IMG/VR virus record: IMGVR_UViG_3300042564_002819
Coordinates: 1-64,000 of that record
Reading direction: 5' to 3' (one strand)
Length of the DNA stretch: 64,000 bases
The notes beneath the pieces are model-generated. The model was not told the origin of the DNA. It saw nothing but the letters and a program-made list of their open reading frames with translations, and did not search any database. The translations under genes and the position numbers were made by a program. Positions 2,584-19,702 of this stretch are shown piece after piece (position 1 is the stretch's first letter; every line of letters begins with the position of its first letter).

Positions 2584-2618
2584 GAGTTACACATAAAAAA
2601 CGAAAGGGTAAAACAATA

Positions 2619-3506
2619 ATGAGTGCTGACCAATTTAAATTTAAATTTACTAAAGAACAATTAAAAGAAATACTACACGGAAATCCAGATTCAGACAAAT
2701 GGTTTGAAGCATGTGTTTCAATTTTTCCAAAATATGAAATTACAACAATCGAGCGTGTAGCAGGATTTCTAGCCCAATGTGCTCATGAATCCGGTAATTT
2801 TAAAATGTTAGAAGAAAACCTAAACTATAAAGAAGAAACTCTTCTTAAAGTTTTCCCACGTTACTTTGGACCAGGAAAGCGTAACGCAAAAGAATACGCT
2901 CGTAACCCAGAGAAGATTGCAAACTATGTTTACATGGACGAGTTCCGTACTAGCAAGATGGGTAACGTAAAAGAAGGCGACGGCTGGAGATTCCGCGGTC
3001 GTGGACTTAAGCAGTTGACTGGTCGTGAGAACTACACTAACTTTGGTAAGAGTGTTAACATGACAGCAGAACAAGCCGCAGATTATGTTGCAACAGAAAA
3101 AGGTGCTATCGAATCAGCTTGCTGGTTCTGGAATAGTAAAAAATTAAATGCTGTTGCTGATACACAAGACATTGTTAAAATGACCAAGATCATCAACGGT
3201 GGCGACATTGGTTTAGCTGATCGTAAAAGCCGTTTTGAACATGCATTAAAGGTACTTGGCGGAAATTTTACGCCATCCGCTGCCGCATCAAGCGTATCTA
3301 CCGCAGCGTCAGCATCGACTTCAGAAACTTTAAAGAAAGGATCAAAAGGCCCTTCCGTAGCAAAATTGCAAGAAGCACTTGGAATTACAGCAGACGGCTC
3401 ATTTGGCCCTGGAACAGAGTCAGCATTAAAGGCTTGGCAAGCAAAGAATGGGTTAACAGCGGACGGAGTAGCTGGACCAAAAACGTTAGCAAAGTTACTA
3501 AGTTAA
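2619..3506 (+). CDS. Endolysin: glycoside hydrolase family 19 domain plus C-terminal peptidoglycan-binding domain
   Basis: FLAQCAHESG, DGWRFRGRGLKQLTGRENY, KIINGG GH19 motifs; Ala/Ser linker; LKKGSKGPSVAKLQEALG..ADGSFGPGT..ALKAWQ..NGL.ADGVAGPKT PG_binding_1 domain. Confidence 0.92.
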   Translation: MSADQFKFKFTKEQLKEILHGNPDSDKWFEACVSIFPKYEITTIERVAGFLAQCAHESGNFKMLEENLNYKEETLLKVFPRYFGPGKRNAKEYARNPEKIANYVYMDEFRTSKMGNVKEGDGWRFRGRGLKQLTGRENYTNFGKSVNMTAEQAADYVATEKGAIESACWFWNSKKLNAVADTQDIVKMTKIINGGDIGLADRKSRFEHALKVLGGNFTPSAAASSVSTAASASTSETLKKGSKGPSVAKLQEALGITADGSFGPGTESALKAWQAKNGLTADGVAGPKTLAKLLS

Positions 3507-5516: not shown

Positions 5517-6009
5517 CTTAATGTTAGAGGCTCCTGTTAAAAAGTTTGATTACGAATTAATGCATCCAGCACCGCTTGCACTCGACATGATAGACATCAT
5601 GAATAAAGAAAGTGGGCTTGGGTTAAGTGCAAATCAAGTAGGATTGAACGCACAAATCTTTGTTATGAAAACTATATTAAATAAAACCCACGGCAATCCG
5701 TTGGTAGTTATTAACCCTATAATTACAGGTTTGAGCAAAGAGATAGAAGAAGGTATAGAAGGCTGCTTGAGCCATCCTGATTTATTCTTGAAGGTTAGGA
5801 GACCTATATCCTGTACAGTTGAATTTGACACCTTGACAAATGACCTTAAAAGTGTTATACATGTAGATACAAAGTTCGATGACATAGATGCCCGCATATT
5901 CTTACACGAATATGATCATTTGCACGGCATTCAGTTTACTAACCGAGTCAGTAAATTGAAACTAACAATGGCAGAAAAACGTCGATTAAAAAGGAAAAAG
6001 AATGGTTGA
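5491..6009 (+). CDS. def: Peptide deformylase
   Basis: GLGLSANQVG, EGCLS and HEYDHLHG motifs. Confidence 0.93.
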   Translation: MMQLIKAPNLMLEAPVKKFDYELMHPAPLALDMIDIMNKESGLGLSANQVGLNAQIFVMKTILNKTHGNPLVVINPIITGLSKEIEEGIEGCLSHPDLFLKVRRPISCTVEFDTLTNDLKSVIHVDTKFDDIDARIFLHEYDHLHGIQFTNRVSKLKLTMAEKRRLKRKKNG

Positions 6010-8260
6010 GCCAACTAAACACTTACAATTAGTTTTTGATAAAGCTAACAATGATGCAAAAAAGTTGCAACACGAGTATATTACACTTGAGCATCTTTTG
6101 TACGCAATGCTATGTGATGAAAATTTTGAAGGCATTATTACTGGGTACGGTGCAGACCCAGTTCTAATGAAGAAAAATTTAGAAAATTATCTTAAAACTA
6201 AGTTAGAAGAAATTAAAGTTACTGATACTAAGTATAAGCCTAAAAAAACTAGTACAGTTGAAAGAGTGCTTAGTCGTGCGTTTGCACAGGTACTTTTCCA
6301 AGGAAGAAATCAAATTGACATCTCTGATGTTTTTATAAGCATCTTGAGTGAAAAAAGATCACATGCATACTTTATCACTCAGCAAGCTGGCATTGACAAA
6401 GATAAATTTGTCATGCACATTAACACAGATGTCGAAGAGTACAGCGAAGCTACTCAAGAAGTATTTGAAAATCAAGGTATTGCAAGTAAAGCACTAAAAA
6501 CATTTACTACTGATTTGAATGCTAATGTTAAGGCAAATAAGATTGATCCGGTGATTGGTCGAGATGAAGAAATTGAACAAGTTGCATTGGCTCTCGGTCG
6601 TCGTACAAAATCTAACGTGCTAATGGTCGGCGATCCGGGTGTTGGTAAAACTGCAATTGCAGAAGGTCTTGCATGGCGTATTGTTAACAAGCAAGTGCCT
6701 AAGTTCTTAGAAGACTATACTGTGTACTCGTTGGACATTGGAAGTATGCTTGCTGGTTCCAAGTATCGCGGAGACTTTGAAGAACGATTTAAACTTGTGT
6801 TGCAAGGCTTAACTACAAAAGGCAACACCATTATGTTTATCGACGAAGCACACATGATTTCAGGTGCCGGTGCCGGTAGCGGAAACAGTGCAAACGATCT
6901 TGCTAATATGCTAAAACCTGCACTGTCAAAAGGAAATATTAAAGTAGTTGCATCTACTACTTGGGAAGAATATCGCAAGTATTTCGAAAAAGATCGTGCT
7001 CTTATGCGTCGTTTCCAACGTGTAAGTGTTGACGAACCTACGTCCGAGATGGCAATTGATATTCTTAAAGGAGTTAGAAAATACTACGAAGAGTATCACA
7101 AGGTCGAAATTACTGACGCAGCAATTGAAGAAGCTGTTAAGTTATCAGTAAAATATCAAGCTGACAAAAAGCTTCCTGATAAAGCGATTGATCTTATCGA
7201 CGTTGCATGTTCTAGATTTAAAGTTCTAGAACAAGAAGATAATAAAGTAGTTGACGTCAAGAATATTCAATTTGAATTGGCAAAGTTAATTAAGATTCCT
7301 GAAGAACAAGTTGCTGAAAAAGAAACTGAAAATCTTGCTCACCTCGAGTCTAATCTTAAAGGAAGTGTATACGGACAAGATTCTGCAATCGAAACTATTG
7401 TCGACAAGATTTTAGTAGCACAAGCCGGTCTTAAATCAGAAAACAAACCTATTGGGTCGTTTGTGTTTATGGGTCCAACTGGTACAGGTAAGACTGAAAC
7501 AGCCAAACAACTTGCAAAACATCTCGGAGTAAATCTTGTTAGATTTGACATGAGTGAATACCAAGAAAAGCATTCGGTTGCAAAGTTTATCGGTGCACCT
7601 CCGGGTTATGTAGGGTTTGAAGACAACGCCGGACAACTTATAGTTAAGCTACAGGAGAATCCAAATTGCGTTCTTTTGCTTGACGAAATTGAAAAAGCAC
7701 ATCCAGAAGTTAGTGCAGTTTTGTTGCAACTAATGGATAACGGTAAAGTCACTGGCTCAAACGGCAAAGAAGCAGATGCGAGAAATTGCATACTTATCTT
7801 AACTACTAACTTAGGTGCTAAAGAAGCAGAGAAGAACAGTATCGGATTTGGAGACAGCTTAGAAAGAGATTACGAAGACGGTGAATTAAAGAAATACTTT
7901 GCACCAGAATTCCGTAATAGACTTGACGCTATTATTACATTTAGCAAGCTTGGTAAACCGGTAATGCTCAAGATTGTAGGGAAGTTCTTGTCTGAACTTA
8001 GAGATCAGGTTGCTGGAAAAGAAATTAAGATTTCAGTTACCGACGAAGCTCTTGACTATCTTGTTGACAAAGGTTTTGATACTAAGATGGGAGCTAGACC
8101 GTTGCAACGTGTTATTGACAAAGATATTAAACGTCCACTATCGAGACTTATGTTGTTCGGAGAGTTAAAGAACGGCGGCAAAGTTAACATCAATTTAAAA
8201 AATAATGAGATAACCCTTGAAGTATTTGCAAATGAAGAATCAAAAATTGCACGAAACTAA
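6002..8260 (+). CDS. clpA: ClpA-like AAA+ chaperone/protease ATPase subunit
   Basis: Clp N domain, two Walker A motifs (GDPGVGKT, GPTGTGKT), KYRGDFEER, RFDMSEYQEKHSV, GARPL; 752 aa without the ClpB middle domain. Confidence 0.93.
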   Translation: MVEPTKHLQLVFDKANNDAKKLQHEYITLEHLLYAMLCDENFEGIITGYGADPVLMKKNLENYLKTKLEEIKVTDTKYKPKKTSTVERVLSRAFAQVLFQGRNQIDISDVFISILSEKRSHAYFITQQAGIDKDKFVMHINTDVEEYSEATQEVFENQGIASKALKTFTTDLNANVKANKIDPVIGRDEEIEQVALALGRRTKSNVLMVGDPGVGKTAIAEGLAWRIVNKQVPKFLEDYTVYSLDIGSMLAGSKYRGDFEERFKLVLQGLTTKGNTIMFIDEAHMISGAGAGSGNSANDLANMLKPALSKGNIKVVASTTWEEYRKYFEKDRALMRRFQRVSVDEPTSEMAIDILKGVRKYYEEYHKVEITDAAIEEAVKLSVKYQADKKLPDKAIDLIDVACSRFKVLEQEDNKVVDVKNIQFELAKLIKIPEEQVAEKETENLAHLESNLKGSVYGQDSAIETIVDKILVAQAGLKSENKPIGSFVFMGPTGTGKTETAKQLAKHLGVNLVRFDMSEYQEKHSVAKFIGAPPGYVGFEDNAGQLIVKLQENPNCVLLLDEIEKAHPEVSAVLLQLMDNGKVTGSNGKEADARNCILILTTNLGAKEAEKNSIGFGDSLERDYEDGELKKYFAPEFRNRLDAIITFSKLGKPVMLKIVGKFLSELRDQVAGKEIKISVTDEALDYLVDKGFDTKMGARPLQRVIDKDIKRPLSRLMLFGELKNGGKVNINLKNNEITLEVFANEESKIARN

Positions 8261-8927
8261 AAAACTGCATTACGGAAAATATTTGTACAAGATTAGTATC
8301 GAAAATCCTCTGACATATATTTTCCGTACACAGAATCAACGTAGTGGTAAACTCGGCTATGCTAGAACTAAACTAGAAGAGTTTGTCACTAACAAAAAGC
8401 CGAAGTCTTTTGTATTAAATACACGATACAGAAAAACAGTAGTCGAGCCCGAACACATCAAAGATGCACAATCGATTTATAATATACTCAGAATCGAGGA
8501 AGATTATATAATAAGATGTGAGCACAAGAAGTTACTCATTTATAGCAATTCTGTAGACTTAATCGACAAAATTTCTAATAAAGTAGTAGGTGAAGTCGAA
8601 ACCTGGAAGCCAGATGATAAAGCATTATCTACTTTAACAGAACAAAAAAACGTTATTATAAGTAACAAACCTACCGACTATCCTTACAAAGTTACGTTTG
8701 GTAACAAACCTGCAAAGCCTGAATTAGCTGCGTGGATTGCAAAAAATACCGATAAAGTATTAGCCGGACCTATCTTGATGAAAAATCTCCAATACGGCCT
8801 TCGGTGGATACAAGGACAGTACATATTTGCTAGAGACGAAAACATTATTATGTTATTACAAATGATTGTTGGTGATAACATAGCAAGAATTGATAAAATA
8901 ATCTATAAGGCTAATATAGATAAATAG
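8217..8927 (+). CDS. Hypothetical protein
   Basis: Long ORF overlapping the clpA end; start may be 8232. Confidence 0.7.
   Translation: MKYLQMKNQKLHETKKLHYGKYLYKISIENPLTYIFRTQNQRSGKLGYARTKLEEFVTNKKPKSFVLNTRYRKTVVEPEHIKDAQSIYNILRIEEDYIIRCEHKKLLIYSNSVDLIDKISNKVVGEVETWKPDDKALSTLTEQKNVIISNKPTDYPYKVTFGNKPAKPELAAWIAKNTDKVLAGPILMKNLQYGLRWIQGQYIFARDENIIMLLQMIVGDNIARIDKIIYKANIDK
8919..8926 (+). promoter_or_regulatory. Putative late promoter (GATAAATA)
   Basis: Late consensus ending 5 nt before the ATG at 8932, at the head of the small modular-protein cluster. Confidence 0.55.
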
Positions 8928-8931
8928 TTAT

Positions 8932-9297
8932 ATGTCAGTAACTAGCGAAATTATTTTATCAGTGCAAACTCATCCTGTCGGTAACAGTGAAGAATCTGTT
9001 ACCGGCAATTCCTTTAAAGGCGACGGATATTACAATAGATCCGACGGATTTCATACTGTGCAGTACAGTGTTATTGGATTTGTTGGTACTATCAAGATGC
9101 AAGCCACACTGTCTACTAGTCCAGCCGAAGGCGATTGGTTCACAGTATCTGATTCAGTTCATACAAGTGCTAACACTAATGCAACTGAAAGTAATGGTTC
9201 ATTTATTAAAAATTTTACAGGTAACTATGTGTGGGTTAGAGCAGTCATATCCGGTTGGACTGCTGGCACTGTTTCGTCGATATTGTTAAATCACTAA
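8932..9297 (+). CDS. Hypothetical protein, beta-rich, possibly a virion component
   Basis: 121 aa, Ser/Thr/Gly-rich; follows a late promoter. Confidence 0.65.
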   Translation: MSVTSEIILSVQTHPVGNSEESVTGNSFKGDGYYNRSDGFHTVQYSVIGFVGTIKMQATLSTSPAEGDWFTVSDSVHTSANTNATESNGSFIKNFTGNYVWVRAVISGWTAGTVSSILLNH

Positions 9298-9306
9298 GGA
9301 AGTATT

Positions 9307-9903
9307 ATGAAAAATTTTATAAGTATAATTTGGGAAGAAGGCAACGTAAATAAAGACAAGCTAGTCGAATCTGTAATTAATACTAACAATCTTCCACTAA
9401 ATGAGAGTAATGTAAAATACATATCCGGCAAAACCGAACAGGGTGCTAACTTATTACGTATAGCTATTACTAAAAATTTATCAGAAAGCGAATGCGATAT
9501 ACTTGCAGATAAAATTGCAGATAAAGTATTTGAAATGGGCCTAGATGACTTCGATCTCGAATTTACTACTGAAGATGAAGTAGTGGATGAAGAAACCTAC
9601 GATGGCGATGAATTCTACGAAGCATACGGAGTTATGTGGTTCAACGAAGACGAAATATTAGACGAAGCAGAATATCAAGGACGCAAAGTACCGCTAGGAA
9701 AACCTATGCGTGGTGACGTTAAAAAATTTAAAGTGTATGTAAGAAACCCAAGTGGCAACGTAGTTAAAGTAAACTTCGGCGATCCTAACATGAAAATTAA
9801 AAAGTCTAACCCAGCAAGACGCAGAAGTTTCCGTGCAAGACACAATTGTGATAATCCTGGACCTAGAACTAAGGCAAGATATTGGAGTTGCAGGGCTTGG
9901 TGA
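9307..9903 (+). CDS. Two-part protein: acidic N domain plus basic C module (VKKVNFG-type, ARYWSC) seen in large myoviruses
   Basis: LDE|AEYQGRKV...KFKVYV..NVVKVNFGDPNMKIKK.NPARRRSFRARHNC...KARYWSCRAW. Confidence 0.65.
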   Translation: MKNFISIIWEEGNVNKDKLVESVINTNNLPLNESNVKYISGKTEQGANLLRIAITKNLSESECDILADKIADKVFEMGLDDFDLEFTTEDEVVDEETYDGDEFYEAYGVMWFNEDEILDEAEYQGRKVPLGKPMRGDVKKFKVYVRNPSGNVVKVNFGDPNMKIKKSNPARRRSFRARHNCDNPGPRTKARYWSCRAW

Positions 9904-10012
9904 TGCATTACAATACTTTACATTGGAAAAAAAGCATGGGTAAGCACATTAGTAGAGGAAAACATAAAAACTTCCTAGTCGAACAACTAAGTACATATAA
10001 GGATTTGACATA

Positions 10013-10369
10013 ATGGTAAAAATAGTCGAATTTACCGATCTTGCATTAAATGCACACACCAATGAACCTAATGGAGCACTTCCTTGGGATGTAGTAGAAG
10101 ATTTGGTTGTGTATATGCGTAACGAGCCAAACTTTTACAGACAAAAGTTATACCCTACAATGTTAGAAGTTCAAAAAACTGTTAAAAAAGGCGGCAAGTT
10201 TAATAAAAGAAAAATGATACCTCTTGTAGACGAAGCTGTTTTGTCGTATATTAAAAAGTATAACATCAAAAAAACACCAGAAGAATTGCTATCAGATTCT
10301 GAAAAAATGGATTGCATTTCTAAAATTTTAGAAGACGAAGTAGAAAACTTTAAAAAAGGATCTTATTAA
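10013..10369 (+). CDS. Hypothetical protein
   Basis: 118 aa ORF coupled to the next gene; MVKIVEF N-terminus. Confidence 0.7.
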   Translation: MVKIVEFTDLALNAHTNEPNGALPWDVVEDLVVYMRNEPNFYRQKLYPTMLEVQKTVKKGGKFNKRKMIPLVDEAVLSYIKKYNIKKTPEELLSDSEKMDCISKILEDEVENFKKGSY

Positions 10370-11886
10370 TGCAACTAAGAGAACTGTTTAATCAAAATAA
10401 GACAACAGCAGTTCTTGCATTTGGAAGAATGAATCCAATTACTATTGGACATCGCAAATTAGCTGAAACAATAAAAAGTATACCCGGCGACGGTTATATT
10501 TTTCTTTCTCATAAACAAAATTCTAAAACCGATCCTTTAAGTTTTGAAACAAAACTTAAGTTTGCAAAAGAATACTTTCCAGGGATAACTGTTGGTGATT
10601 CGTCGGTAAGAACTATTATCGAAGCTATTAAAAAAGTAAATTCACTAGGTTACACAAAACTGGTTTATGTAGCAGGTTCGGACAGAGTTAACGAATTTAC
10701 ACAACTACTAAATGCATATAACAATAAAGAATACTTCTTCGAGAGTATTGAAATAGTTAATGCAGGAGCACGAGATCCTGACGCCGAAGGTGTCGAAGGC
10801 ATTAGTGCAAGCAAACTTAGAGAAGCTGCTATAAAAAATGATGTTAAAACATTTCTAGCAGGAACTCCTAACAACAAGTTTTCTTTAGAAATGTTTGAAG
10901 CTGTTCGTAAAAATATGACCGATGTTACGTCCGAGCCCAAGCATAGCAATGTAAAAAAAAATGATTTAATACCAGCATTGGAAAAATTTCTTCCAATTGC
11001 TATGGAAGTATTAAACATTGAAAAACTTCCAAAAATTAAACTAGAAAAACATATAGAAACAAAAGATCAGCCATCATTTGGCAGATTTGTAAATGACAAA
11101 GTTGTTATCCACCTAGGAATTCAAAATCGTCATCCTATAGATATTCTAAGAACATTGGCTCATGAACTTGTACATTTTAAACAATTACTAGATGGAAAAC
11201 TAGACAAAAATAGTGGCATGACAGGAAGCCCTGAAGAAAACGAAGCACACATTAAAGCAGGCATCGTTATGCGTCTGTTTGACAAAAAATATCCAGAATA
11301 TTTTAAAGAACCAGCAGTTAATTTTTCAGAATCAAAAGTAATGTATGTCGAACCGCAGTTCGACGTAGAATGGGATGAGGCAAAAAGATATCCCGAATTT
11401 GCTAAGTTAGGATTCGAAGGATGGCTCAACCTTGTTAAAAAAGGCAAAGCTGTAACTATTAAATCGGCAAAGGGTATAAACAACACCGATGCTAATGAGC
11501 CTGATAGTTTTAAATCTTTAGATCAAAACAAACAAAAACGAGCAATGTCGCAAATACAAAGCGGCAAAGTAGAAATGCCAATAATAGCAGTTTACCCAGA
11601 TGGTTGGAAAGAGCTTATTGGCGGAAATACTCGTTTAACAGGGATGTTAGCAACACAAAGCAAAGCAACTGTTTGGGTCTTTAAAGTTCCTAATGAAATT
11701 CTAGATGAAAACTTTGCAGATGGTAAAGTAAAAGGTAAAAGCAGACCAGGACGTGTAAAACGTGCAGGTGCTAGTTGCAACGGTAGTGTTACAGCACTAC
11801 GTAAAAGAGCAAAAAACAGTTCAGGTGAAAAAGCGAGGATGTATCATTGGTGTGCAAACATGAAGAGTGGACGCAAGAAGAACTAG
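10369..11886 (+). CDS. Multidomain protein: HIGH-type nucleotidyl/cytidylyltransferase + HExxH module + ParB/Srx-like module + basic C-terminal module
   Basis: FGRMNPITIGH, YVAGSDRV, RDPDAEGVEGISASKLR; LAHELVH...ENEA; MPIIAVYPDG..ELIGGNTRL; Cys-containing basic tail. Confidence 0.7.
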   Translation: MQLRELFNQNKTTAVLAFGRMNPITIGHRKLAETIKSIPGDGYIFLSHKQNSKTDPLSFETKLKFAKEYFPGITVGDSSVRTIIEAIKKVNSLGYTKLVYVAGSDRVNEFTQLLNAYNNKEYFFESIEIVNAGARDPDAEGVEGISASKLREAAIKNDVKTFLAGTPNNKFSLEMFEAVRKNMTDVTSEPKHSNVKKNDLIPALEKFLPIAMEVLNIEKLPKIKLEKHIETKDQPSFGRFVNDKVVIHLGIQNRHPIDILRTLAHELVHFKQLLDGKLDKNSGMTGSPEENEAHIKAGIVMRLFDKKYPEYFKEPAVNFSESKVMYVEPQFDVEWDEAKRYPEFAKLGFEGWLNLVKKGKAVTIKSAKGINNTDANEPDSFKSLDQNKQKRAMSQIQSGKVEMPIIAVYPDGWKELIGGNTRLTGMLATQSKATVWVFKVPNEILDENFADGKVKGKSRPGRVKRAGASCNGSVTALRKRAKNSSGEKARMYHWCANMKSGRKKN

Positions 11887-11958: not shown

Positions 11959-12186
11959 ATGAATATAGAAGATCTAAAGAGATTAGCAGGAATAACAGAA
12001 TTTAAAGGTTATACACCTTACGAAGGTTCTAACATTTCTGTAACCGGGACTGAAAAGCGTCGTATAGAACGAGAAAAAAACATTAAACCTGGAGACAAAG
12101 AATGGTTTGAATTGTGGTTTAATCTTCCATACATGACAGGTTCGCTAAATACAAAGCCGGGCTTTAGAGGACGAAAGAAAAAATGA
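11959..12186 (+). CDS. Small hypothetical protein
   Basis: 75 aa; MNIEDLKRLAGI N-terminus, IKPGDKEWFELWF motif. Confidence 0.7.
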   Translation: MNIEDLKRLAGITEFKGYTPYEGSNISVTGTEKRRIEREKNIKPGDKEWFELWFNLPYMTGSLNTKPGFRGRKKK

Positions 12187-12578
12187 GATTCAAAGATATT
12201 ATTTCCGAAGCATCCAAGCCAAAAGATTATGGAATTCCAGCTGCTATAGATCCTGATGTTGAACGATCAATTCCGGGAACTTTTGTTATACCCGAATTAA
12301 GAAACACAGATCCCTACATGCAATATCGTATGGGATTAGCACTTGCAGTTGCACAAGCAACTAAAAGCAGAGAAGTTAAGTTTGATCAAGAAACAGCTTG
12401 GGCTGAAAATTTTATTACTACTGCATATGCCGAAGAAGAACAAGAAACTATTAAACTAGCAGCAAAGTTAATGGGAGTTAGTACAAGGCAAGTTACCAGT
12501 ACTAAAAGTCAAGAGATCGACAGCGTTAACAAAACAAGTCCAGTTGCTAAACCAAAACGCAACAAATACGGAGTTTAA
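12183..12578 (+). CDS. Hypothetical protein, paralog A
   Basis: Shares QYR..ALA core and NKTSPVAKPKRNKYGV C-terminus with 12580..12966. Confidence 0.75.
   Translation: MRFKDIISEASKPKDYGIPAAIDPDVERSIPGTFVIPELRNTDPYMQYRMGLALAVAQATKSREVKFDQETAWAENFITTAYAEEEQETIKLAAKLMGVSTRQVTSTKSQEIDSVNKTSPVAKPKRNKYGV
12528..12565 (+). repeat. 38-bp direct repeat, copy 1
   Basis: AACAAAACAAGTCCAGTTGCTAAACCAAAACGCAACAA, identical to 12916..12953. Confidence 0.9.
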
Positions 12579-12579
12579 C

Positions 12580-12966
12580 ATGAAAGTAAGAGAAATTGTA
12601 AGCGAAGCTGCTGGAAGCAAATTATCAAAAAGAGAACAAGAAGCAACTGTAGGATTGCATACATACGACGATGGCCCAAATCTTGGAGCATTCGGCAGTG
12701 ACTACGGACAATACAGATTAATGATGGCTCTTGCTTGTTCCGACGGAAAGACTCCGCCTGATATAGATGCATTAAGCTGGATCGGGAAGAAGAAAACTGC
12801 ACACCCTTATACCGATGTTGAAGCAGAAATGCTTAAGCAAGGTTATAAAGTAATCGGTCTAAAATACGACGACTTAAATAAAGGTGATACAAAAAGCAAA
12901 GAGCTTGATAGCACAAACAAAACAAGTCCAGTTGCTAAACCAAAACGCAACAAGTATGGTGTATAA
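12580..12966 (+). CDS. Hypothetical protein, paralog B
   Basis: Start moved to MKVREIVSE at 12580, immediately after the paralog A stop; same C-terminus as paralog A. Confidence 0.75.
   Translation: MKVREIVSEAAGSKLSKREQEATVGLHTYDDGPNLGAFGSDYGQYRLMMALACSDGKTPPDIDALSWIGKKKTAHPYTDVEAEMLKQGYKVIGLKYDDLNKGDTKSKELDSTNKTSPVAKPKRNKYGV
12916..12953 (+). repeat. 38-bp direct repeat, copy 2
   Basis: Identical to 12528..12565. Confidence 0.9.
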
Positions 12967-13418
12967 TGAAAATTGAAGACCTATTCGAAGAAAAAGGAAC
13001 AAAAGCTGAAGCAGGTTATCAGCCCGATCCTAAGAATGGTCAAAAATGTATTAATTGTACAATGTGGAGAGATCCAAACAAGTGTACAGCAGTTGCAGGT
13101 AATATTAGTCCAAACGGTTGGTGCAAATGGTATGCCGGCGGTGCTTACGGTAAGCGTGGCAAAAAAATCGACGAAGACGGACGTATTGTGAAAGGTGTTA
13201 ACACTACTATTGACGTAGGTCCGGACGAAATTAAAAAGCAAAGTGCAAAGTTTGGAAACTCAGTAACAAAAGATGGATTACCTCCATTTTTAAGAACAAA
13301 CGGTAAGGTAAACGAAGAAGCCAAGTATACTTTGCGTGAATGGGCAGCAATTCAAGGTGGACATACTTTAGAAGATGAACCAATAAAACCTAAGTTATTT
13401 GATTGGAATAAATATTAA
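12966..13418 (+). CDS. Protein with N-terminal HiPIP-like [4Fe-4S] domain plus further short modules
   Basis: AGYQPDP..GQKCINCTMW...KCTAVAGNISPNGWCKWY matches the HiPIP pattern Y..C-x2-C..C..V.G.I...GWC; no signal peptide. Confidence 0.72.
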   Translation: MKIEDLFEEKGTKAEAGYQPDPKNGQKCINCTMWRDPNKCTAVAGNISPNGWCKWYAGGAYGKRGKKIDEDGRIVKGVNTTIDVGPDEIKKQSAKFGNSVTKDGLPPFLRTNGKVNEEAKYTLREWAAIQGGHTLEDEPIKPKLFDWNKY

Positions 13419-13419
13419 T

Positions 13420-13611
13420 ATGCTAATTCGCGAGTTACAAGATACAAAAGTTTTTTCAATATTTGTTGCAACTGTACAAGTTAAACAAAACTTTTATAGT
13501 CAATGGATCCCTGTGCAGGTGTCGGCCCGTAACATGCAAGAAGCAAAACAGCAGATTCTAGCCCAATATGGAAAAGATTCAAAAATTAGCGGATTAAAAA
13601 AAGCAAAATGA
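13420..13611 (+). CDS. Small hypothetical protein
   Basis: MLIRELQD start at 13420, just after the previous stop. Confidence 0.6.
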   Translation: MLIRELQDTKVFSIFVATVQVKQNFYSQWIPVQVSARNMQEAKQQILAQYGKDSKISGLKKAK

Positions 13612-13781
13612 AAATTGTAGAGATAACTGAAAAAGCTTTATTAAAAACTCCATTGGGTAGAGAAAAAATAAAAGCAGACCAAGCTAGAGGAAATGATCCT
13701 TGGCCTAAAAAAAGTAAGCCTACACTTGGCCCTACACAAAAACATCCACTGCGTGGAAAATTAGTTGGAGGCGGCTTATAA
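13608..13781 (+). CDS. Small basic hypothetical protein (57 aa, not in ORF track)
   Basis: Manual translation MKIVEITEK...HPLRGKLVGGGL*; ATGA and TAATG coupling on either side. Confidence 0.7.
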   Translation: MKIVEITEKALLKTPLGREKIKADQARGNDPWPKKSKPTLGPTQKHPLRGKLVGGGL

Positions 13782-13957
13782 TGAAAATACTTGAAATAAT
13801 TGAGTCTGCATCAGCAGGAGCCACTGGTGCAAGTGGAATAGCAACTGTTGTTAATCCATCTAAAAAATCTAAAAAGTCTAAAACATGGAAACCTACTGAT
13901 AATGCATTAGACATGAAAAATACAAGTTTGTTTGGCACAACTCTAATAAAACGATAA
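13781..13957 (+). CDS. Small hypothetical protein (58 aa, not in ORF track)
   Basis: Manual translation MKILEIIESASAGATGASGIATVVNP...NALDMKNTSLFGTTLIKR*. Confidence 0.7.
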   Translation: MKILEIIESASAGATGASGIATVVNPSKKSKKSKTWKPTDNALDMKNTSLFGTTLIKR

Positions 13958-13983: not shown

Positions 13984-14499
13984 ATGAGAAATAAAAAGAT
14001 TAGCGAAGGACTATCAGAGTTAGCAGACACAACAGATCGTGATCATGAAATTCAGATGGCTCGTGCAGAATTATATAAAATTGCAGATTATGCTATCCAA
14101 CTACATAATCTATTAAGAAATATTTCAGAAGAAGAAGGTCTAGAAGCCTGGCAACAATCAAAAATAACAAAAGCAGCCGATTATGTTGGCTCTGTATTCC
14201 ATGCACTATCATACGATAAGAAAGTTCAACCTTCAGTCGGATCACCTACACCGCCAATGGCATCAAGTCCTGCACAGCTAGGAATGTCAGAATCCGATAT
14301 CAAAAACTATAAGTCGTTGCTTGAAAAAGCAAAGTCAAGAGCACAACAAAAGTTTATGGGCATGGTTTATGCTGCAAAGAAAGGCGAAAAGCCTGCTAGT
14401 CCAGAAGTTGCTAAAGTTGCAAAAGGCATGAGTAAGAGTGATGCAAAAGACTTTGCAAAAACAAAGCACAAAGGTAAACCAGAGCACGTCAAGAAATAA
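13984..14499 (+). CDS. Hypothetical protein with C-terminal DUF3008-like basic module
   Basis: HEIQMARAEL..LEAWQQSKITKAADY module followed by AKSRAQQKFMGMV..AKKG...MSKSDAKDFAKTKHKGKPE. Confidence 0.65.
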   Translation: MRNKKISEGLSELADTTDRDHEIQMARAELYKIADYAIQLHNLLRNISEEEGLEAWQQSKITKAADYVGSVFHALSYDKKVQPSVGSPTPPMASSPAQLGMSESDIKNYKSLLEKAKSRAQQKFMGMVYAAKKGEKPASPEVAKVAKGMSKSDAKDFAKTKHKGKPEHVKK

Positions 14500-15706: not shown

Positions 15707-18373
15707 GTGCCGTACGTTGACGCAATGTTCGATAGAGATAATGATATTATCCGATTAGTCGAACGAAAAGATGGTAAAAGAATTTATCAAGAATATCCAG
15801 TAAAATATACTTTCTATTACGGTGATCCTAAAGGCAAATATAAAAGCGTTTATGGTGATCCGCTTAGTAGAATAGTCTGCAAGAATACTAAAGACTATAG
15901 AAAAGAACTTGCAATTAACAAAAATAAAACACTATTCGAGTCTGACATTAATCCTATTTTTCAATGCTTAAGTGAAAATTATGAAAATCAAGATGCACCA
16001 AAGTTAAACGTTGCATTTTTTGACATCGAGACCGACTTTGATCCTGAGAGAGGATTCGCTCCAACAAACGATCCCTTCATGCCAATTACGGCAATTACAG
16101 TTCATTTGCAATGGTTAGATGCATTAATTACGCTGGCTGTTCCTCCAAAAACTCTCACAATGGAACAAGCTAAAGAACTTTGCGTTGAATGGGGTGACTC
16201 ATGTATACTGTTCGAAAAAGAAGCAGACATGCTTGATACATTTCTTGACTTAATACAAGACGCTGACATTTTAAGCGGTTGGAACTCAGAAGGGTATGAC
16301 GTTCCTTATACTGTAAATAGAGTAGCTCGTGTACTAAGTAAGAACGACACTAGAAGATTCTGTTTGTGGGATCAACATCCCAAAAAACGAGAATACGAAA
16401 AATATGGAAAAACTTCTGAGACATATGATTTTGTAGGCCGTGTGCATATTGACTCGCTAGAGCTTTATAGAAAATACACATACGAAGAACGTCATAGCTA
16501 TAGACTTGACGCGATCGGCGAAATGGAGATCGGCGAAAACAAAACTGTTTACGAAGGTACGCTAGATCAACTGTATAACAACGACTTTAGAACTTTTATT
16601 GAATACAACAGACAAGACGTTGCACTACTCGACAAACTAGATAAAAAACTTCGTTTTATTGATCTAGCAAATGAAATTGCACATGATAATACAGTTCTAT
16701 TGCAAACTATTATGGGTGCCGTAGCTGTTACTGAACAAGCTATTATTAACGAAGCACACAGACGAGGTATGCAAGTTCCTAACAGACGTGATCACGGCGG
16801 TAACACTCAAGCTGCCGGTGCGTATGTTGCATATCCTAAAAAAGGGTTGCATCAGTGGATTGGTTCTATGGACTTAAACAGTTTGTATCCATCTGTTATT
16901 AGAGCGTTGAACATGGCGCCAGAAAGTATCGTTGGGCAATTAAGACCTGAATATACAGATCAATATATCTACGAACAAATGACGTTGCATAAAAAGAGTT
17001 TTGCGGCAGCATGGGAAGGCCTATTTGGTACTTTTGAATATATGTGGGTTATGGAACAGCGTAGAGATAAAACAATTACAATCGACTGGGAAGACGGAAG
17101 ATCGGATGTTTTAAGCGGTGCTGAAATTTATAAATTAATGTTTGACAGCAACATGCCGTGGATGATTAGTGCCAATGGCACTATATTTACACACGAGTTT
17201 GAATCTGTTATTCCTGGATTGTTAGCTCGCTGGTATAAAGAACGTAAAGAACTACAAGCAATGCTTAAAAAAGCAAAGGATGCAGGAAACGAAACAGAAA
17301 TTTCGTTCTGGGATAAGCGACAGCTAGTTAAGAAAATTAACCTTAATAGTTTATATGGTGCTATTCTAAATCCAGGTTGCAGATTCTTTGATAAAAGAAT
17401 AGGTCAGTCAACTACACTCACCGGTAGACAGATTGCAAAACACATGGCTGGAAAAGTAAATGAAATAGTTACTGGCGATTATAACCATGTTGGACAAGCT
17501 GTAATCTACGGTGATACAGACTCTGTATATTTTAGTGCGTATCCAACACTTAAAAACGAGATCAATGCAGGAAAAATACCGTGGAGTAAAGAAAACGTTG
17601 TTACATTGTATGATCAGATTGCCAACGAAGTAAACAAAACATTTAGTGATTTTATGGGAAGTGCATTCCATTGCCCAAAAACTCGTGCCGAAGTTATTAA
17701 AGCAGGTCGCGAAATTGTAGGCGAAACTGGATTGTTTATTACTAAGAAACGCTATGCTGTTCTAGTGTATGACGAAGAAGGCAAGCGTAAAGATATCGAC
17801 GGTAAGCCAGGTAAAATAAAAGCAATGGGTCTTGATCTTAAACGCTCCGATACGCCAGTATTCATGCAAGACTTTTTGTATGATCTTTTAACTATGGTAT
17901 TGCTACAAGAACCTGAAAAAGCAATTCTCGATAGTATTACAAAATTTAGAAGAGACTTTAAATCTAGACCTGGTTACGAAAAAGGTTCTCCTAAACGTGC
18001 TAATAACATTCAAGCATATCAACGAGAAGAAGCAAAACTCGGAAGAGCTAACATGCCTGGACATGTTAGGGCAAGTATTAACTGGAATACATTAAAACGC
18101 ATGAACGGTGATCGATATTCACAAGAGATTGTTGACGGTATGAAAGTTATTGTTTGCAAGGTAAAACAAAATCCTCTAGGATTTACCAGTGTCGCATATC
18201 CAACTGACGAACTGCGTTTACCTCAGTGGTTTAAAGAATTGCCGTTTGATGATAGTGCAATGGAAGAAGTTATCATTGATAACAAGCTTGATAACCTAAT
18301 CGGAGTTCTAGATTACGATTTGCAGTCAACAAAGCAAAACACAACTTTTAATTCTTTATTTGAATGGGAATAA
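15707..18373 (+). CDS. Family B DNA polymerase (T4 gp43-like)
   Basis: Exo I FFDIETD, Exo II GWNSEGYD, Exo III YNRQDV; Pol motifs DLNSLYPS, KKINLNSLYG, YGDTDS, KKRYA; GTG start after AAGGAG; no intein. Confidence 0.96.
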   Translation: MPYVDAMFDRDNDIIRLVERKDGKRIYQEYPVKYTFYYGDPKGKYKSVYGDPLSRIVCKNTKDYRKELAINKNKTLFESDINPIFQCLSENYENQDAPKLNVAFFDIETDFDPERGFAPTNDPFMPITAITVHLQWLDALITLAVPPKTLTMEQAKELCVEWGDSCILFEKEADMLDTFLDLIQDADILSGWNSEGYDVPYTVNRVARVLSKNDTRRFCLWDQHPKKREYEKYGKTSETYDFVGRVHIDSLELYRKYTYEERHSYRLDAIGEMEIGENKTVYEGTLDQLYNNDFRTFIEYNRQDVALLDKLDKKLRFIDLANEIAHDNTVLLQTIMGAVAVTEQAIINEAHRRGMQVPNRRDHGGNTQAAGAYVAYPKKGLHQWIGSMDLNSLYPSVIRALNMAPESIVGQLRPEYTDQYIYEQMTLHKKSFAAAWEGLFGTFEYMWVMEQRRDKTITIDWEDGRSDVLSGAEIYKLMFDSNMPWMISANGTIFTHEFESVIPGLLARWYKERKELQAMLKKAKDAGNETEISFWDKRQLVKKINLNSLYGAILNPGCRFFDKRIGQSTTLTGRQIAKHMAGKVNEIVTGDYNHVGQAVIYGDTDSVYFSAYPTLKNEINAGKIPWSKENVVTLYDQIANEVNKTFSDFMGSAFHCPKTRAEVIKAGREIVGETGLFITKKRYAVLVYDEEGKRKDIDGKPGKIKAMGLDLKRSDTPVFMQDFLYDLLTMVLLQEPEKAILDSITKFRRDFKSRPGYEKGSPKRANNIQAYQREEAKLGRANMPGHVRASINWNTLKRMNGDRYSQEIVDGMKVIVCKVKQNPLGFTSVAYPTDELRLPQWFKELPFDDSAMEEVIIDNKLDNLIGVLDYDLQSTKQNTTFNSLFEWE

Positions 18374-18809: not shown

Positions 18810-18987
18810 GATTTACAACTTAATAGCACGTCTAGAAGAAAAGATTAACAATTTAATCAACTCTACTGAAAGACAAGAGCAAGAATTAACTTTGCTTAGA
18901 AATGAATTCGAACTTGTTAAAAACGAAGGTTGTTGGCTTTCTAAACAAAATCCAGATCATGTACACGGAGATTTTAAACATGAATAA
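18790..18987 (+). CDS. Small coiled-coil hypothetical protein
   Basis: 65 aa, overlap-coupled on both sides. Confidence 0.6.
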   Translation: MHDKDLEIYNLIARLEEKINNLINSTERQEQELTLLRNEFELVKNEGCWLSKQNPDHVHGDFKHE

Positions 18988-19702
18988 ATTTATCTTTGAT
19001 GTTGATGGAACATTAACTCCTAGCAGAATGCCAATTGACAAAAACTTTGCTGAATACTTTATATCTTTTTGCAATGATAATTCTGTTTATCTAGTTACCG
19101 GTTCTGACTATGCTAAAACTCTTGAACAATTAGGAGAAGACATTTGTCTTTCTGTAAAAAAAGTATACAATTGTTCCGGAAACGAAGTACGAGAAAAAGA
19201 AACATTGGTTAAATCAAGCGATTGGTCTTTATCCAAAAATGCAAAAGAATGGCTGTTAAATCAACTGTCTCAAAGTTCTTTTCCTTTAAGAACTGGCAAT
19301 CATATTGAAGAACGTACCGGAACTGTGAATTTTAGCGTTGTTGGTAGAAATGCAACTTTAAAAGAAAGAATGATGTATGTTCAATACGACCGTATGACTA
19401 ATGAACGAGAATTGATTGCAACAGATTTTAATCTTACATTTGACACATTGGATGCAAAGGTCGGTGGTGAAACAGGAATCGATATCTTTTTAAAAGGACA
19501 CGACAAACGTCAGATTATTAAAGATTTTAGTAAGCAACATAAACTTATCTTTTTTGGAGATAGGATGGATATTAAAGGAAATGATTATCCTTTAAAGAAT
19601 GAAATTGAAACTAATAACCGAGGTATTTGTTATAACGTTAAAGATTGGCAAGATACTTACGAACGGTTAATGTATTTGCAGGAGGCCAAGATAGCAGCAT
19701 GA
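18980..19702 (+). CDS. HAD-IIB phosphomannomutase (eukaryote-type PMM family)
   Basis: FIFDVDGTLT, LVTGSD, IEER.GTVNFSVVGRNA, GGETGIDI, FFGD...GNDYP. Confidence 0.85.
   Translation: MNKFIFDVDGTLTPSRMPIDKNFAEYFISFCNDNSVYLVTGSDYAKTLEQLGEDICLSVKKVYNCSGNEVREKETLVKSSDWSLSKNAKEWLLNQLSQSSFPLRTGNHIEERTGTVNFSVVGRNATLKERMMYVQYDRMTNERELIATDFNLTFDTLDAKVGGETGIDIFLKGHDKRQIIKDFSKQHKLIFFGDRMDIKGNDYPLKNEIETNNRGICYNVKDWQDTYERLMYLQEAKIAA

Follow-up and report, generated by a model that had tools for sequence, protein, structure and literature searches.

The window analysed here is a whole stretch of 64,000 nucleotides (positions 1 to 64,000 of the IMG/VR virus record IMGVR_UViG_3300042564_002819), and the features that concern us are collected in Table 1. 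The gene under study, P0001, starts with an ATG that overlaps the stop codon of the upstream ORF (TAATG), and it belongs to a tightly packed run of genes in one orientation, directly upstream of the DNA polymerase gene and far from the head genes. Full-length homologues with 66-87% identity to P0001 were found in metagenomes, and the locus was present in lake and river metagenomes from 19 studies, 3 of which are possible sources of the assembly. Note that the phage carrying P0001 is a lake-water jumbo phage. Comparison of P0001 with the PHROGs assigned no family. A preliminary description, made from sequence alone, had called this ORF and quoted motifs from it; both held, as the translation of 150 aa contains exactly these motifs. 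Its statement that the HiPIP-like domain is followed by unrelated modules also held: residues 71-111 and 112-150 occur alone and in other fusions.

Table 1. Features of the P0001 locus; positions refer to the window and residues to P0001
Feature	Position	Strand	Description	Basis
Whole gene P0001	12966..13418	+	150 aa plus stop: leader, HiPIP, basic linker, module B, module C	ORF list and translation
N-terminal leader MKIEDLFE	12966..12989	+	Residues 1-8; amphipathic acidic helix ending L-F-E; T4 CTS-like; putative prohead-protease site after E8	
PioC-type mini-HiPIP domain	12990..13145	+	Residues 9-60	Pfam, PioC match, fold match
Basic linker YGKRGKKIDE	13146..13175	+	Residues 61-70, ending I-D-E70; putative second protease site, junction to module B	
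Module B	13176..13298	+	Residues 71-111, DGRIVKGVNTT..DV..GN.V..G.PP; elsewhere the N-terminus of many proteins, directly behind a leader	
Module C	13299..13415	+	Residues 112-150, ..EW..GGH..KLFDWNKY-COOH	
Upstream polyvalent-type protein	10369..11886	+	505 aa; cytidylyltransferase-like NTase, HExxH stretch, basic Cys/His tail	
Two leader-bearing paralogues	12183-12578, 12580-12966	+	Common 16-residue C-terminal tail; 40% identity over about 87 aa	
Four small downstream genes	13420-13611, 13608-13781, 13781-13957, 13984-14499	+	Three of the four fused to HiPIP or B+C in other phages	

Our results showed that residues 9-60 of P0001 are a bona fide PioC-type mini-HiPIP with four ligands and an aromatic shield, since the Pfam, PDB and fold matches agree and the Cys, Tyr and Trp positions are invariant in 32 phage domains; the Fe-S content and the potential are inferred. 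The Pfam HIPIP model (PF01355) matched residues 9-57 with an E-value of 6.5e-6 and 26.8 bits, above the curated gathering cut-off of 22 bits, and a six-frame search of the whole genome with the same model gave 28.2 bits. When the PDB was searched with phmmer, residues 9-60 matched PioC from Rhodopseudomonas palustris TIE-1 (6xyv; E 1.2e-10), with all four cysteines aligned residue for residue and the spacing Cx2Cx8Cx12C being that of PioC. In the AF2 model, pLDDT was 82-85 over residues 11-55, and the 17 PDB hits returned by Foldseek were all HiPIPs, PioC being the best (TM 0.79, rmsd 1.8 A, with 43% identity in the structural alignment). P0001 thus shares with PioC and the PioC-like mini-HiPIPs (PF01355) a domain of ~52 residues, the conserved Tyr before Cys1 and the Gly-Trp before Cys4. 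The predicted [4Fe-4S] ligands are C28 (13047-13049), C31 (13056-13058), C40 (13083-13085) and C53 (13122-13124), and Y18, W34, W52, W55 and Y56 are the predicted cluster-shielding aromatics. Across the 32 phage HiPIP domains, the invariant positions are Y18, C28, C31, M33, W34, R35, P37, C40, A42-G45, G51, W52 and C53, and at least 90% of the domains keep W55 and Y56. The HiPIP-like domain proposed in the preliminary description therefore held, both by Pfam HMM and by predicted structure, while the Fe-S cluster that it had also proposed is still inference.

Another possibility could be that this is a degenerate HiPIP fold without Fe-S, in which the four cysteines bind Zn or form disulfides and the domain is just a structural knuckle. 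In support of this, small Cys-based structural modules are abundant in polyvalent and ejected proteins, biochemical data are absent, and Cys4 has been lost in a few distant relatives (P0209, P0222 and P0233). However, the ligand spacing is exactly that of PioC, to which the domain is 43% identical, and the shielding Tyr and Trp residues, invariant across the 32 diverged phage domains, are hard to explain for a Zn knuckle. We consider this possibility very unlikely.

The HiPIP of P0001 belongs to a large, signal-less and virus-associated branch of the HiPIP family, as established from the IMG/VR contigs, the scans of species genomes and GenBank phages, the profile search and the grouping in the tree. 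The branch is present in at least 86 IMG/VR contigs. Among 50,697 GenBank phage records only cyanophage S-SRM01 has a signal-less HiPIP, and megablast of the P0001 region against GenBank phages gave no match. No relative was recovered when 185,579 species genomes (one genome each) were scanned with two peptide patterns, although this is weak evidence of absence. The profile search retrieved 2,485 clusters, and of the best 145 there were 96 signal-less and 32 Tat-like. In the tree, the Tat-bearing PioC-like proteins group together, apart from the signal-less phage HiPIPs; note that this is a quick tree only, built on 49 columns and with weak support. Besides forming this separate group, the phage HiPIPs differ from PioC in their CTMW/F signature past Cys2 and in their fusion to other modules, and they lack the SRRxFL Tat signal and the hydrophobic region carried by the PioC-like bacterial proteins (85-125 aa). 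In UniProt, two phage proteins have been labelled 'HiPIP family profile domain-containing' by automatic annotation, and no discussion of phage HiPIPs was found in the literature searched.

HiPIPs are generally known as Tat-exported periplasmic electron carriers of bacteria, and they have been described as natural Tat substrates (PMC13673990). The leader of P0001 is neither a Tat nor a Sec signal. Among 59 distinct N-terminal phage HiPIPs, none had an uncharged or hydrophobic run of at least 8 residues within the first 40, and RR was present in just one, without a hydrophobic region after it. The twin-arginine signal that characterises the classical periplasmic HiPIP carriers is found neither in P0001 nor in these 59 N-termini, although 32 relatives of bacterial type carry it. 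The absence of an export signal, claimed previously for P0001, was confirmed by these N-termini and by the acidic, amphipathic nature of its first 8 residues.

P0001 could nevertheless be an electron carrier acting in the periplasm, ejected or exported by an unrecognised route, which would resemble the product of an auxiliary metabolic gene and plug into the HiPIP partners of the host (bc1, cbb3 oxidase, reaction centre). The closest solved relative, PioC, is a periplasmic electron shuttle. Moreover, relatives with the architecture leader, HiPIP, LysM and GH19 exist, and a cell-wall hydrolase must act in the periplasm; likewise, one metagenome protein matching module B has a Sod_Cu Pfam domain, and bacterial Cu/Zn SOD is periplasmic. 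Against this possibility, a signal peptide was seen in 0 of the 59 N-termini, the commonest fusion partners (NTase, ParB-like, NUDIX, Acb1 and InPase) are cytoplasm-directed, the copies per virion would be few compared to the carriers of the host itself, and the Tat-bearing HiPIPs form a branch apart from the signal-less ones. This reading is, in our opinion, very unlikely.

What the leader resembles is the capsid-targeting sequence (CTS) that targets the T4 internal proteins to the core (PMC3012670). The pattern [LIVFMY]xE was present in 53 of 54 distinct leaders of phage HiPIPs, compared to 71 of the 435 N-termini of P0001's own genome, the latter counted with a looser regular expression in the same script. 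In the cluster of P0001 the DNA of the leaders is not conserved and the conservation is that of a peptide pattern. That the leader could be a DNA recombination cassette was rejected within this genome, where five leaders differ in their codons and the upstream DNA is unrelated. The T4 proteins IPII and IPIII start with MKTYQEFIAE and IPI with MKTFKEF. The HiPIP of S-SRM01 (QPX48026.1) starts with MKSFQEFLFE, a near-copy of the targeting sequence of the T4 internal proteins, and the P0123 leader, MKTFKEYLTE, is also close to the T4 CTS. P0001's MKIEDLFE shares with it only the pattern and is a looser match than either of these two leaders. The back-translated CTS pattern matched only the HiPIP gene in the 240 kb of S-SRM01; it also matches T4 gp61.1, recorded as a hypothetical protein, which is not known to be a head protein. 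Note that the pattern was written post hoc, after both sequences had been seen. MK followed by AT-rich codons is in any case favoured at gene starts in AT-rich phages. The 'capsid-targeting leader' of the preliminary description is thus possible, but it is a resemblance only, indirectly supported, and packaging remains inferred.

Sites of the [LIV]xE type bracket the HiPIP of P0001 (LFE8 and IDE70). In 52 of 67 distinct HiPIP fusions a [LIV]xE site lies 6-22 residues past Cys4, compared to 16% of the control windows, and [LIVFM]xE plus one residue precedes module B in 100 of 104 proteins, whether this module is N-terminal or internal. [LIV]xED may merely belong to module B. In T4, gp21 cleaves its substrates behind Glu (ITE-6 and LTE-619 in Alt; PMC5694885), and this genome encodes a gp21-type prohead protease (Peptidase_S77, genome positions 139582-140208, E 1.3e-26). 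All 7 genomes that are complete or nearly so and have a leader-bearing HiPIP, this one and S-SRM01 among them, encode an S77 protease. In addition, the T4 gp23 cleavage site (LTE followed by A) aligns with LSE followed by S in the capsid protein of this phage. P0001 thus has an [LI]xE that closes its leader, and its genome encodes a gp21-type protease, as is required of a T4-type internal or ejected head protein; cleavage of P0001 itself is inferred. Complex prediction of the prohead protease with P0001(1-75) scored 0.00, which counts neither for nor against.

IPI, IPII, IPIII and Alt of T4 are CTS-targeted, gp21-processed and ejected head proteins. P0001 is like them in its short leader, which shares their pattern as a looser match and closes with [LI]xE, and in its predicted mature part, which would be small and basic. 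Its gene set is likewise hypervariable and shuffled, and its genome has a gp21-type protease and a capsid-protein cleavage site kept as LxE. In contrast, there is no homology beyond the leader, no T4 internal protein has a metal cluster, and the packaging of P0001 is unproven.

Regarding the C-terminal half of P0001, module B is N-terminal in 84 of the 104 proteins that bear it and occurs just once in this genome. It was also matched in the Sinorhizobium jumbo phage Phosso, and the metagenome proteins matching it include carriers of Sod_Cu, NT5C, DUF5661 or CTP_transf_1 Pfam domains. Modules B and C together constitute an abundant stand-alone protein of about 87 aa. The alignment of module C (A3, 49 sequences) revealed an invariant E, GGH and a C-terminal K.F..KY. 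AF2 on B+C alone gave a pLDDT of 60 and nearly no secondary structure, so that module C is likely to depend on a partner or to consist of linear motifs. The ESM Atlas feature search with B+C returned nothing usable.

The genes between 10369 and 14499 are an exploded polyvalent protein, present in the window as separate beads. The upstream ORF (10369..11886) matched phrog_3041 at 1.7e-50 and, weakly, Pfam CTP_transf_like; its tail (residues 447-504) recurs at the C-termini of >20 module-B proteins with an identity of up to 96%, and its type of NTase also heads giant HiPIP-bearing polyvalent ORFs. The two paralogues that follow carry the leaders MRFKDIISE and MKVREIVSE. Two of the genes downstream of P0001 have matches in fusions: ORF 13420 in the C-terminal part of the B+C fusion P0052, and ORF 13608, through its tail, in the tail of the HiPIP fusion P0016. 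The DUF3008 protein (13984) is similar in its N-terminal part to P0067, in which the HiPIP is C-terminal; judged by eye, the L020 architecture is similar in type to that of P0067.

In phages, the HiPIP is a bead that can be exchanged between modular effector proteins of the 'polyvalent' kind. It is found alone (64-76 aa), fused to small modules, as in P0001, or as part of giant polyvalent proteins that reach 1,985 aa. The partners to which it is fused in other lineages are portal plus MuF, portal, head-maturation protease, NUDIX, Acb1, GH19/LysM and ParB-like domains, and in the giant homologues (ORFs of 650-1,985 aa) NTase, ParB_N, Amidoligase_2 and uncharacterised modules surround it. The presence of several unrelated effector-type domains and their shuffling, which define polyvalent proteins, are met for the HiPIP domain family; P0001 itself has three beads with just one recognised domain. 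As in the polyvalent proteins of phages and conjugative elements (Iyer et al. 2017, PMC5512222), the HiPIP ORFs are multi-domain and their neighbours fuse and split between phages. P0001 differs from these in being a three-bead mini version, and neither HiPIP nor any other iron-sulfur module is among the domains described there. An ADP-ribosyltransferase module after the HiPIP of the giants (H-Y-T / S-T-T / E motifs) was considered and was not supported by Pfam or by BLAST against an ART-PolyVal protein. ART-PolyVal and DUF5824 genes adjoin one HiPIP fusion, and this genome has no ART-PolyVal gene.

Some of these fusions involve head proteins. P0175 combines portal, MuF and a C-terminal HiPIP, lies between the terminase and the S78 protease/HK97 capsid genes, and was found in two samples. 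P0226 (portal and HiPIP) and P0168 (HiPIP and MuF) are both in head operons, and P0187 and P0203 combine NUDIX, HiPIP and a head-maturation protease. The names given to BFVD matches include SppA/ClpP-class protease, XkdF and prohead protease. P0175, P0168 and P0226 thus resemble the MuF- or portal-linked cargo of the SPP1 gp7 / MuF polymorphic-toxin type. Note, however, that they come from other lineages, with HK97-type S78 proteases, while P0001 is unfused and far from the head genes. The portal, MuF and protease fusions belong to leaderless sub-branches of other phage lineages.

The position of P0001 raises the possibility that it works purely inside the cell, as an early or middle protein that does not enter the virion: a small cytoplasmic Fe-S redox sensor, regulator or adaptor, whose B+C peptide would have its binding partner in the host or the phage and whose 'leader' would be a mere amphipathic helix with a translation-friendly, AT-rich start. 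In support of this, P0001 is in the block preceding the DNA polymerase gene and there is no late-promoter motif close to it. Moreover, T4 gp61.1, which is small, is encoded beside the primase gene and is not known as a head protein, has the same N-terminal pattern, many signal-less HiPIPs are leaderless and lie among small early-type ORFs, and B+C is predicted to be unstructured, as is typical of partner-binding peptides. Against this reading, the HiPIP has been fused repeatedly and independently to portal, MuF and head-maturation protease, [LIV]xE is enriched exactly at the module borders, and the leader is kept as a peptide pattern and not as DNA. Furthermore, HiPIP chemistry leaves the high-potential cluster reduced in the cytoplasm, and a permanently reduced cluster would be a poor electron carrier there. 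The intracellular reading remains possible.

The T4-type late-promoter motif TATAAATA was not found within 9-16 kb. Because this motif is under-represented genome-wide (26 sites, compared to about 73 expected from base composition) as well as absent from this region, its absence is uninformative on timing. None of the RNA sequencing runs holds the P0001 locus. A link to radical enzymes was not indicated, the RNR small subunit being 240 kb away.

We propose that P0001 is an O2-stable [4Fe-4S] cargo module, packaged in the capsid and ejected into the host; we hold this to be as likely to be right as wrong, and both the packaging and the redox role are inferred. According to this proposal, P0001 would fold and gain its cluster in the host cytoplasm, as the Tat-exported HiPIPs do before export, and the CTS-like leader would carry it into a T4-type prohead. 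There, the gp21-type prohead protease would trim it after LFE8 and IDE70, freeing a basic 62-residue HiPIP (the computed pI of residues 9-69 is 9.4) and the B+C peptide. These pieces would be stored with the DNA and then ejected into the next host. The HiPIP fold would suit a virion cargo, being very small, with a buried cluster, and stable in air for as long as a lake virion is exposed to oxygen. After delivery, the HiPIP would most likely be a one-electron redox-state module that switches with, or senses, the passage from oxidised virion to reduced cell; alternatively, it may be a cluster-stapled, compact cargo or anchor domain for co-delivered effector beads. That P0001 works as a respiratory shuttle is unlikely.

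The virion-packaged reading is supported because signal-less relatives are fused to portal plus MuF, portal and head-maturation protease in head operons, and because the S-SRM01 leader is a near-copy of the T4 targeting sequence and the near-complete genomes with leader-bearing HiPIPs all encode a gp21-type protease. Packaging in the virion, one of the options raised in the preliminary description, has in this way gained independent comparative support, with the packaging of P0001 itself still inferred; the roles suggested there (sensing, counter-defence or structural) have not advanced beyond inference. The evidence for presence in the virion or for ejection is indirect only, coming from the fusions of relatives to portal, MuF and head protease, and there are no proteomic, RNA or biochemical data for P0001 or any relative. 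Against packaging, P0001 adjoins replication genes and not head genes, and its own leader is the looser CTS match.

A bolder reading, which we consider unlikely, is that virion ejection replaces Tat export across diverse tailed phages. The pre-assembled, air-stable HiPIP would be loaded as a separate bead with a CTS tag, or else attached to portal, MuF or head protease, and would be injected at the start of infection. The transition from oxidised to reduced, or an action in the envelope, would then make it a redox switch or electron donor, and this switch would time or arm the co-injected counter-defence enzymes (NUDIX, Acb1, NTase, ParB-like and GH19).

In summary, a large HiPIP branch without signal lives in phage genomes, with sequence clusters numbering in the hundreds and hardly any occurrence in cultured phages, and its members are built into modular polyvalent proteins and, as we infer, head-internal proteins. 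Direct testing is feasible, as the isolated cyanophage S-SRM01, whose host is Synechococcus sp. KCZYC6, carries a HiPIP gene and the domain has only ~60 residues. If packaging is true, phage particles would deliver counter-defence enzymes to the cell and, along with them, a redox-active iron-sulfur protein, which would represent a new class of ejected cargo and would bear on the iron content of aquatic virus particles. If the bolder reading were true, iron-sulfur chemistry would be a regular component of phage particles.

ORF 12966-13418 begins with an ATG that overlaps the preceding ORF's stop, and its 150-residue product (P0001) carries a HiPIP domain. Residues 9-57 matched Pfam HIPIP with 26.8 bits, where the curated cut-off is 22 bits, and a six-frame search of the genome with the same profile gave 28.2 bits. 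The top match among the PDB sequences was PioC of R. palustris TIE-1 (6xyv; P0001 residues 9-60, E 1.2e-10), in which all four cysteines align with those of P0001 in an identical Cx2Cx8Cx12C spacing. PioC is the smallest known HiPIP. Moreover, the AF2 model of P0001, made with 84 homologues as input, had a pLDDT of 82-85 over residues 11-55, and all 17 Foldseek matches to it in the PDB were HiPIPs, with PioC ranking first (TM 0.79, rmsd 1.8 Å, 43% identity). Across 32 diverged phage domains, Y18, C28, C31, M33, W34, R35, P37, C40, A42-G45, G51, W52 and C53 are invariant. Because of these profile, PioC and fold matches and this residue invariance, the family assignment is secure and the [4Fe-4S] site is in all likelihood retained, although the metal content is inferred; Fe-S HiPIP identity of the domain is held with the same high confidence. 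Note that in a few relatives (the profile matches P0209, P0222 and P0233) the fourth cysteine is replaced by Ser or Gly (GWS or GWG); these could lack a cluster or bind one through Ser.

HiPIPs are natural Tat substrates, exported in the folded state (PMC13673990). In P0001, an acidic, amphipathic stretch of eight residues precedes the domain. Within their first 40 residues, 59 distinct N-terminal phage HiPIPs all lack a hydrophobic or uncharged stretch of at least 8 residues, and RR occurs in just one, with no hydrophobic region after it. In contrast, the best 145 profile matches (96 of them signal-less) include 32 Tat-like relatives of 85-125 aa, with an SRRxFL motif and a hydrophobic region ahead of the same domain. 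The phage HiPIP domain has lost its export signal. The preliminary description had quoted this ORF and its motifs, which the P0001 translation contains, as a HiPIP-like domain without export signal; both readings held, the first in the HMM and structure checks and the second at the N-termini of P0001 and the 59 phage HiPIPs.

At least 86 IMG/VR contigs carry the phage-type domain. No instance came up in a scan, limited to patterns, of one genome for each of 185,579 prokaryote species, and three different queries of 50,697 GenBank phage records recovered it only in cyanophage S-SRM01. Among 1.84 billion cluster representatives, a profile search recovered 2,485 clusters at E <= 1e-3, 374 of them at E <= 1e-10. 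In a quick tree, based on 49 columns and weakly supported, every Tat row fell inside one group of 49 rows, P0001 lay deep within a 69-row clade made up wholly of signal-less rows, and the signal labels were more tightly clustered than in all 500 shuffles. A virus-associated HiPIP branch exists. As for the leaderless members, one context contains P22-type gp3 and an Acb3 gene, and the others are short contigs with runs of small ORFs and no marker gene; these contexts are phage-like in appearance.

The source IMG/VR record (330,024 bp, 93% complete, its first 64 kb being the window) encodes a DNA polymerase 43-50% identical to its nearest counterparts, in the jumbo phages Phosso, Atu_ph07, Vibrio 2.275.O and E. 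coli jumbo phages of ~350-380 kb. The P0001 gene adjoins this polymerase gene, away from the head genes, and its locus was found in lake or river metagenomes from 19 studies, 3 of which are possible assembly sources. In the T4-type head module, the protein between protease and capsid protein would be scaffold-like, as inferred from its position. Separately, structural and lysis genes lie near the modular cluster, since PHROG structural matches and an endolysin/chitinase-like gene occur within window 1316-3506.

Coordinates of the features (window positions unless stated otherwise)
Feature	Position	Residues	Description
PHROG matches	1316-1861 and 1864-2580		'virion structural protein'
Lysis gene	2619-3503		endolysin/chitinase-like
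phrog_4871 protein	6002-8260	752 aa	'ATP-dependent protease', E 2e-247; few kb upstream of modular cluster
ORF 10369	10369-11886		cytidylyltransferase-like NTase
ORF 10369 tail	11707-11883	447-504	~58 residues, basic, two Cys and one His (KGKSRPGRVKR..C..HWC..)
Tandem paralogues	12183-12578 and 12580-12966		leader-bearing
P0001	12966-13418 (+)	150 aa	modules A, B and C
Module A		1-62	leader and HiPIP
Module B		~64-111	DGRIVKGVNTT..DV..GN.V..G.PP
Module C		112-150	EW..GGH..KLFDWNKY-COOH
B+C	13176-13415		
DNA polymerase	15707-18373	888 aa	GTG start, without intein
T4-type head module	138.5-142.5 kb of the record		acidic protein, S77 protease, further protein, gp23-like capsid protein
DNA polymerase of syntenic relative	L002 (contig of P0006) 7183-10399		intein (Intein_splicing)
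B-only version, Sinorhizobium jumbo phage Phosso	L008 4971-5165		
T4 gene 61.1	NC_000866 (L011) 18966-19130	54 aa	hypothetical protein

The modules of P0001 were delimited by BLAST against its 120 word-search matches. In B+C, which also exists as an abundant separate protein of ~87 aa, GVNTT, GGH and the C-terminal KLFD[WF]xKY are invariant. Module B alone forms the N-terminus, directly behind the leader, of many proteins, some with Sod_Cu, NT5C, DUF5661 or CTP_transf_1 Pfam domains, and a B-only version is present in Phosso; the source genome has one copy each of B and C. The claim that unrelated modules follow the HiPIP also held, B and C occurring apart from it. Since B+C gave no confident fold in prediction (pLDDT 60), B and C are probably linear-motif or partner-dependent peptides, an inference from that low-confidence prediction. 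The B+C peptide is among the commonest small proteins of these lake phages, with single clusters on up to 29 contigs.

Viral HiPIPs come stand-alone (64-76 aa), fused to one or two modules (120-484 aa) or inside ORFs of 650-1,985 aa. The latter begin with the same cytidylyltransferase-like NTase as ORF 10369 and further contain ParB_N-like, Amidoligase_2-like and unidentified modules, and the window genes resemble an exploded version of such a giant protein. In P0052, B+C is followed by a fused ORF 13420 counterpart; P0016 has the ORF 13608 tail after its HiPIP, and P0067 has the N-terminal part of DUF3008 protein 13984 ahead of its HiPIP, an architecture type also seen, as judged by eye, in locus L020. 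Another HiPIP fusion, P0029, is flanked by a 1,037-aa NTase/DUF5824 protein and an ART-PolyVal gene, and the basic tail of ORF 10369 shows up to 96% identity to the C-termini of >20 B-module proteins. The HiPIP domain is modularly shuffled and is probably a bead of modular effector proteins. Its fusion architecture fits the 'polyvalent protein' concept of Iyer et al. 2017, where HiPIP or iron-sulfur modules are not mentioned. The ORF 10369 tail, conserved far more than the domains attached to it across >20 otherwise different metagenome proteins, could be a DNA-binding or packaging tag. The tandem paralogues (40% identity, both with an MK-type leader) end in a common 16-residue tail (NKTSPVAKPKRNKYGV); beyond a weak phrog_5800 match, they could not be assigned to a family.

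The retrieved sequences of the T4 internal proteins (IPs) start with MKTYQEFIAE (IPII and IPIII) and MKTFKEF...ITE (IPI), and the HiPIP leaders of S-SRM01 (MKSFQEFLFE) and P0123 (MKTFKEYLTE) are near to these. The back-translated pattern M-K-x-[FY]-x-E-[FY]-h-x-E, defined post hoc, had the HiPIP gene as its sole match in S-SRM01 (240 kb), and matched ipII, ipIII and gene 61.1 in T4. Gp61.1, encoded beside the primase gene, starts with MKTFKEFIKE, almost the IP capsid-targeting sequence (CTS), and is not known to have a head-protein role; conceivably, either the CTS-like motif also occurs outside head proteins or packaging of gp61.1 has been overlooked. [LIVFMY]xE is present in 53 of 54 distinct phage HiPIP leaders, the background, taken with a looser regex from that script, being 16% of the source genome's own N-termini. 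Five consecutive window genes (12183-13957), whose leaders are not conserved at the DNA level, have M-[KR]-h-x-[DE]-h-x-x-E in common, and only five further ORFs in the remaining 330 kb share it. As a caveat, AT-rich start codons may shape the N-termini of AT-rich phages. As to the proposed capsid-targeting leader, P0001 shows a resemblance only, its MKIEDLFE sharing just the general pattern, and close IP likeness was seen in the S-SRM01 and P0123 leaders.

In T4, the CTS brings IPs to the core and gp21 cleaves after Glu, e.g. at ITE-6 and LTE-619 of Alt (PMC5694885; PMC3012670). The source genome carries a gene for a protease of the gp21-type S77 family, and its capsid protein has LSE/S aligned with the gp23 cleavage site LTE/A. 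S77 was present in 7/7 near-complete or complete genomes with a leader-bearing HiPIP (this one and S-SRM01 counted) and in one further such record (74% complete); it was not found in two others, only 60-68% complete. [LIVFM]xE lies directly ahead of module B in 100 of 104 proteins, while [LIV]xE occurs 6-22 residues behind the fourth cysteine in 52 of 67 distinct fusions (16% of control windows) and ahead of the HiPIP in 24 of 37 internal cases; LFE8 and IDE70 are the putative sites bracketing the HiPIP of P0001. Note that these counts come from related, not independent, sequences, and that [LIV]xED may be part of module B itself. Protease and cleavage-type motifs are present; cleavage is inferred.

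HiPIP relatives are fused to head proteins, in all cases in phage lineages other than that of P0001. P0175 (portal+MuF+HiPIP), from two independent samples, lies between terminase and S78 protease plus HK97 capsid genes; P0226 is portal+HiPIP, P0168 HiPIP+MuF, and P0187 and P0203 NUDIX+HiPIP+head-maturation protease, P0203 adjoining capsid-cement genes. BFVD matches include viral proteins named SppA/ClpP-class protease, XkdF and prohead protease. Other partners are Acb1 (P0214, 1,306 aa), NUDIX, InPase, ParB-like domains, HAD and Zeta-toxin-like domains, with LysM+GH19 located behind a leader-bearing HiPIP; such non-head partners are typical of ejected counter-defence cargo. The fusions with Acb1 (an anti-CBASS phosphodiesterase), NUDIX hydrolase and InPase (P0214, P0187, P0203, P0265, P0173, P0230) link the HiPIP to enzymes acting on nucleotides and nucleotide signals.

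Leader, protease and fusions, the last being the strongest line, point to the capsid interior, and lend indirect support to the virion-packaged option of the preliminary description. Without expression or proteome data, packaging of the family is an inference that we favour by a narrow margin, and packaging of P0001 itself could as well be true as not. In the proposed mechanism, the cluster would enter P0001 in the cytoplasm, the leader would mediate prohead entry, and cuts at E8 and E70 would give a basic 62-residue HiPIP (computed pI 9.4, residues 9-69) and the B+C peptide, the trimmed pieces being ejected into the next host. HiPIPs combine a very small fold with a buried, air-stable cluster; because of this established chemistry, the fold may have been chosen for virion storage in oxic lakes, as we infer. 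High-potential clusters are kept reduced in the cytoplasm, and since this one would stay so, the delivered HiPIP would probably work not as a shuttle but either as a switch or sensor of redox state or as a compact cargo domain stapled by its cluster; its exact biochemical role is undetermined.

UniProt automatic rules already place the HiPIP profile label on the S-SRM01 protein and on one uncultured-phage protein. HiPIP goes unmentioned in the S-SRM01 paper, and no discussion of phage HiPIPs was found in the literature searched. As far as we have checked, the signal-less virus-associated HiPIP branch, the presence of HiPIP within polyvalent proteins and the HiPIP fusions with portal, MuF and head protease appear to be described here for the first time.
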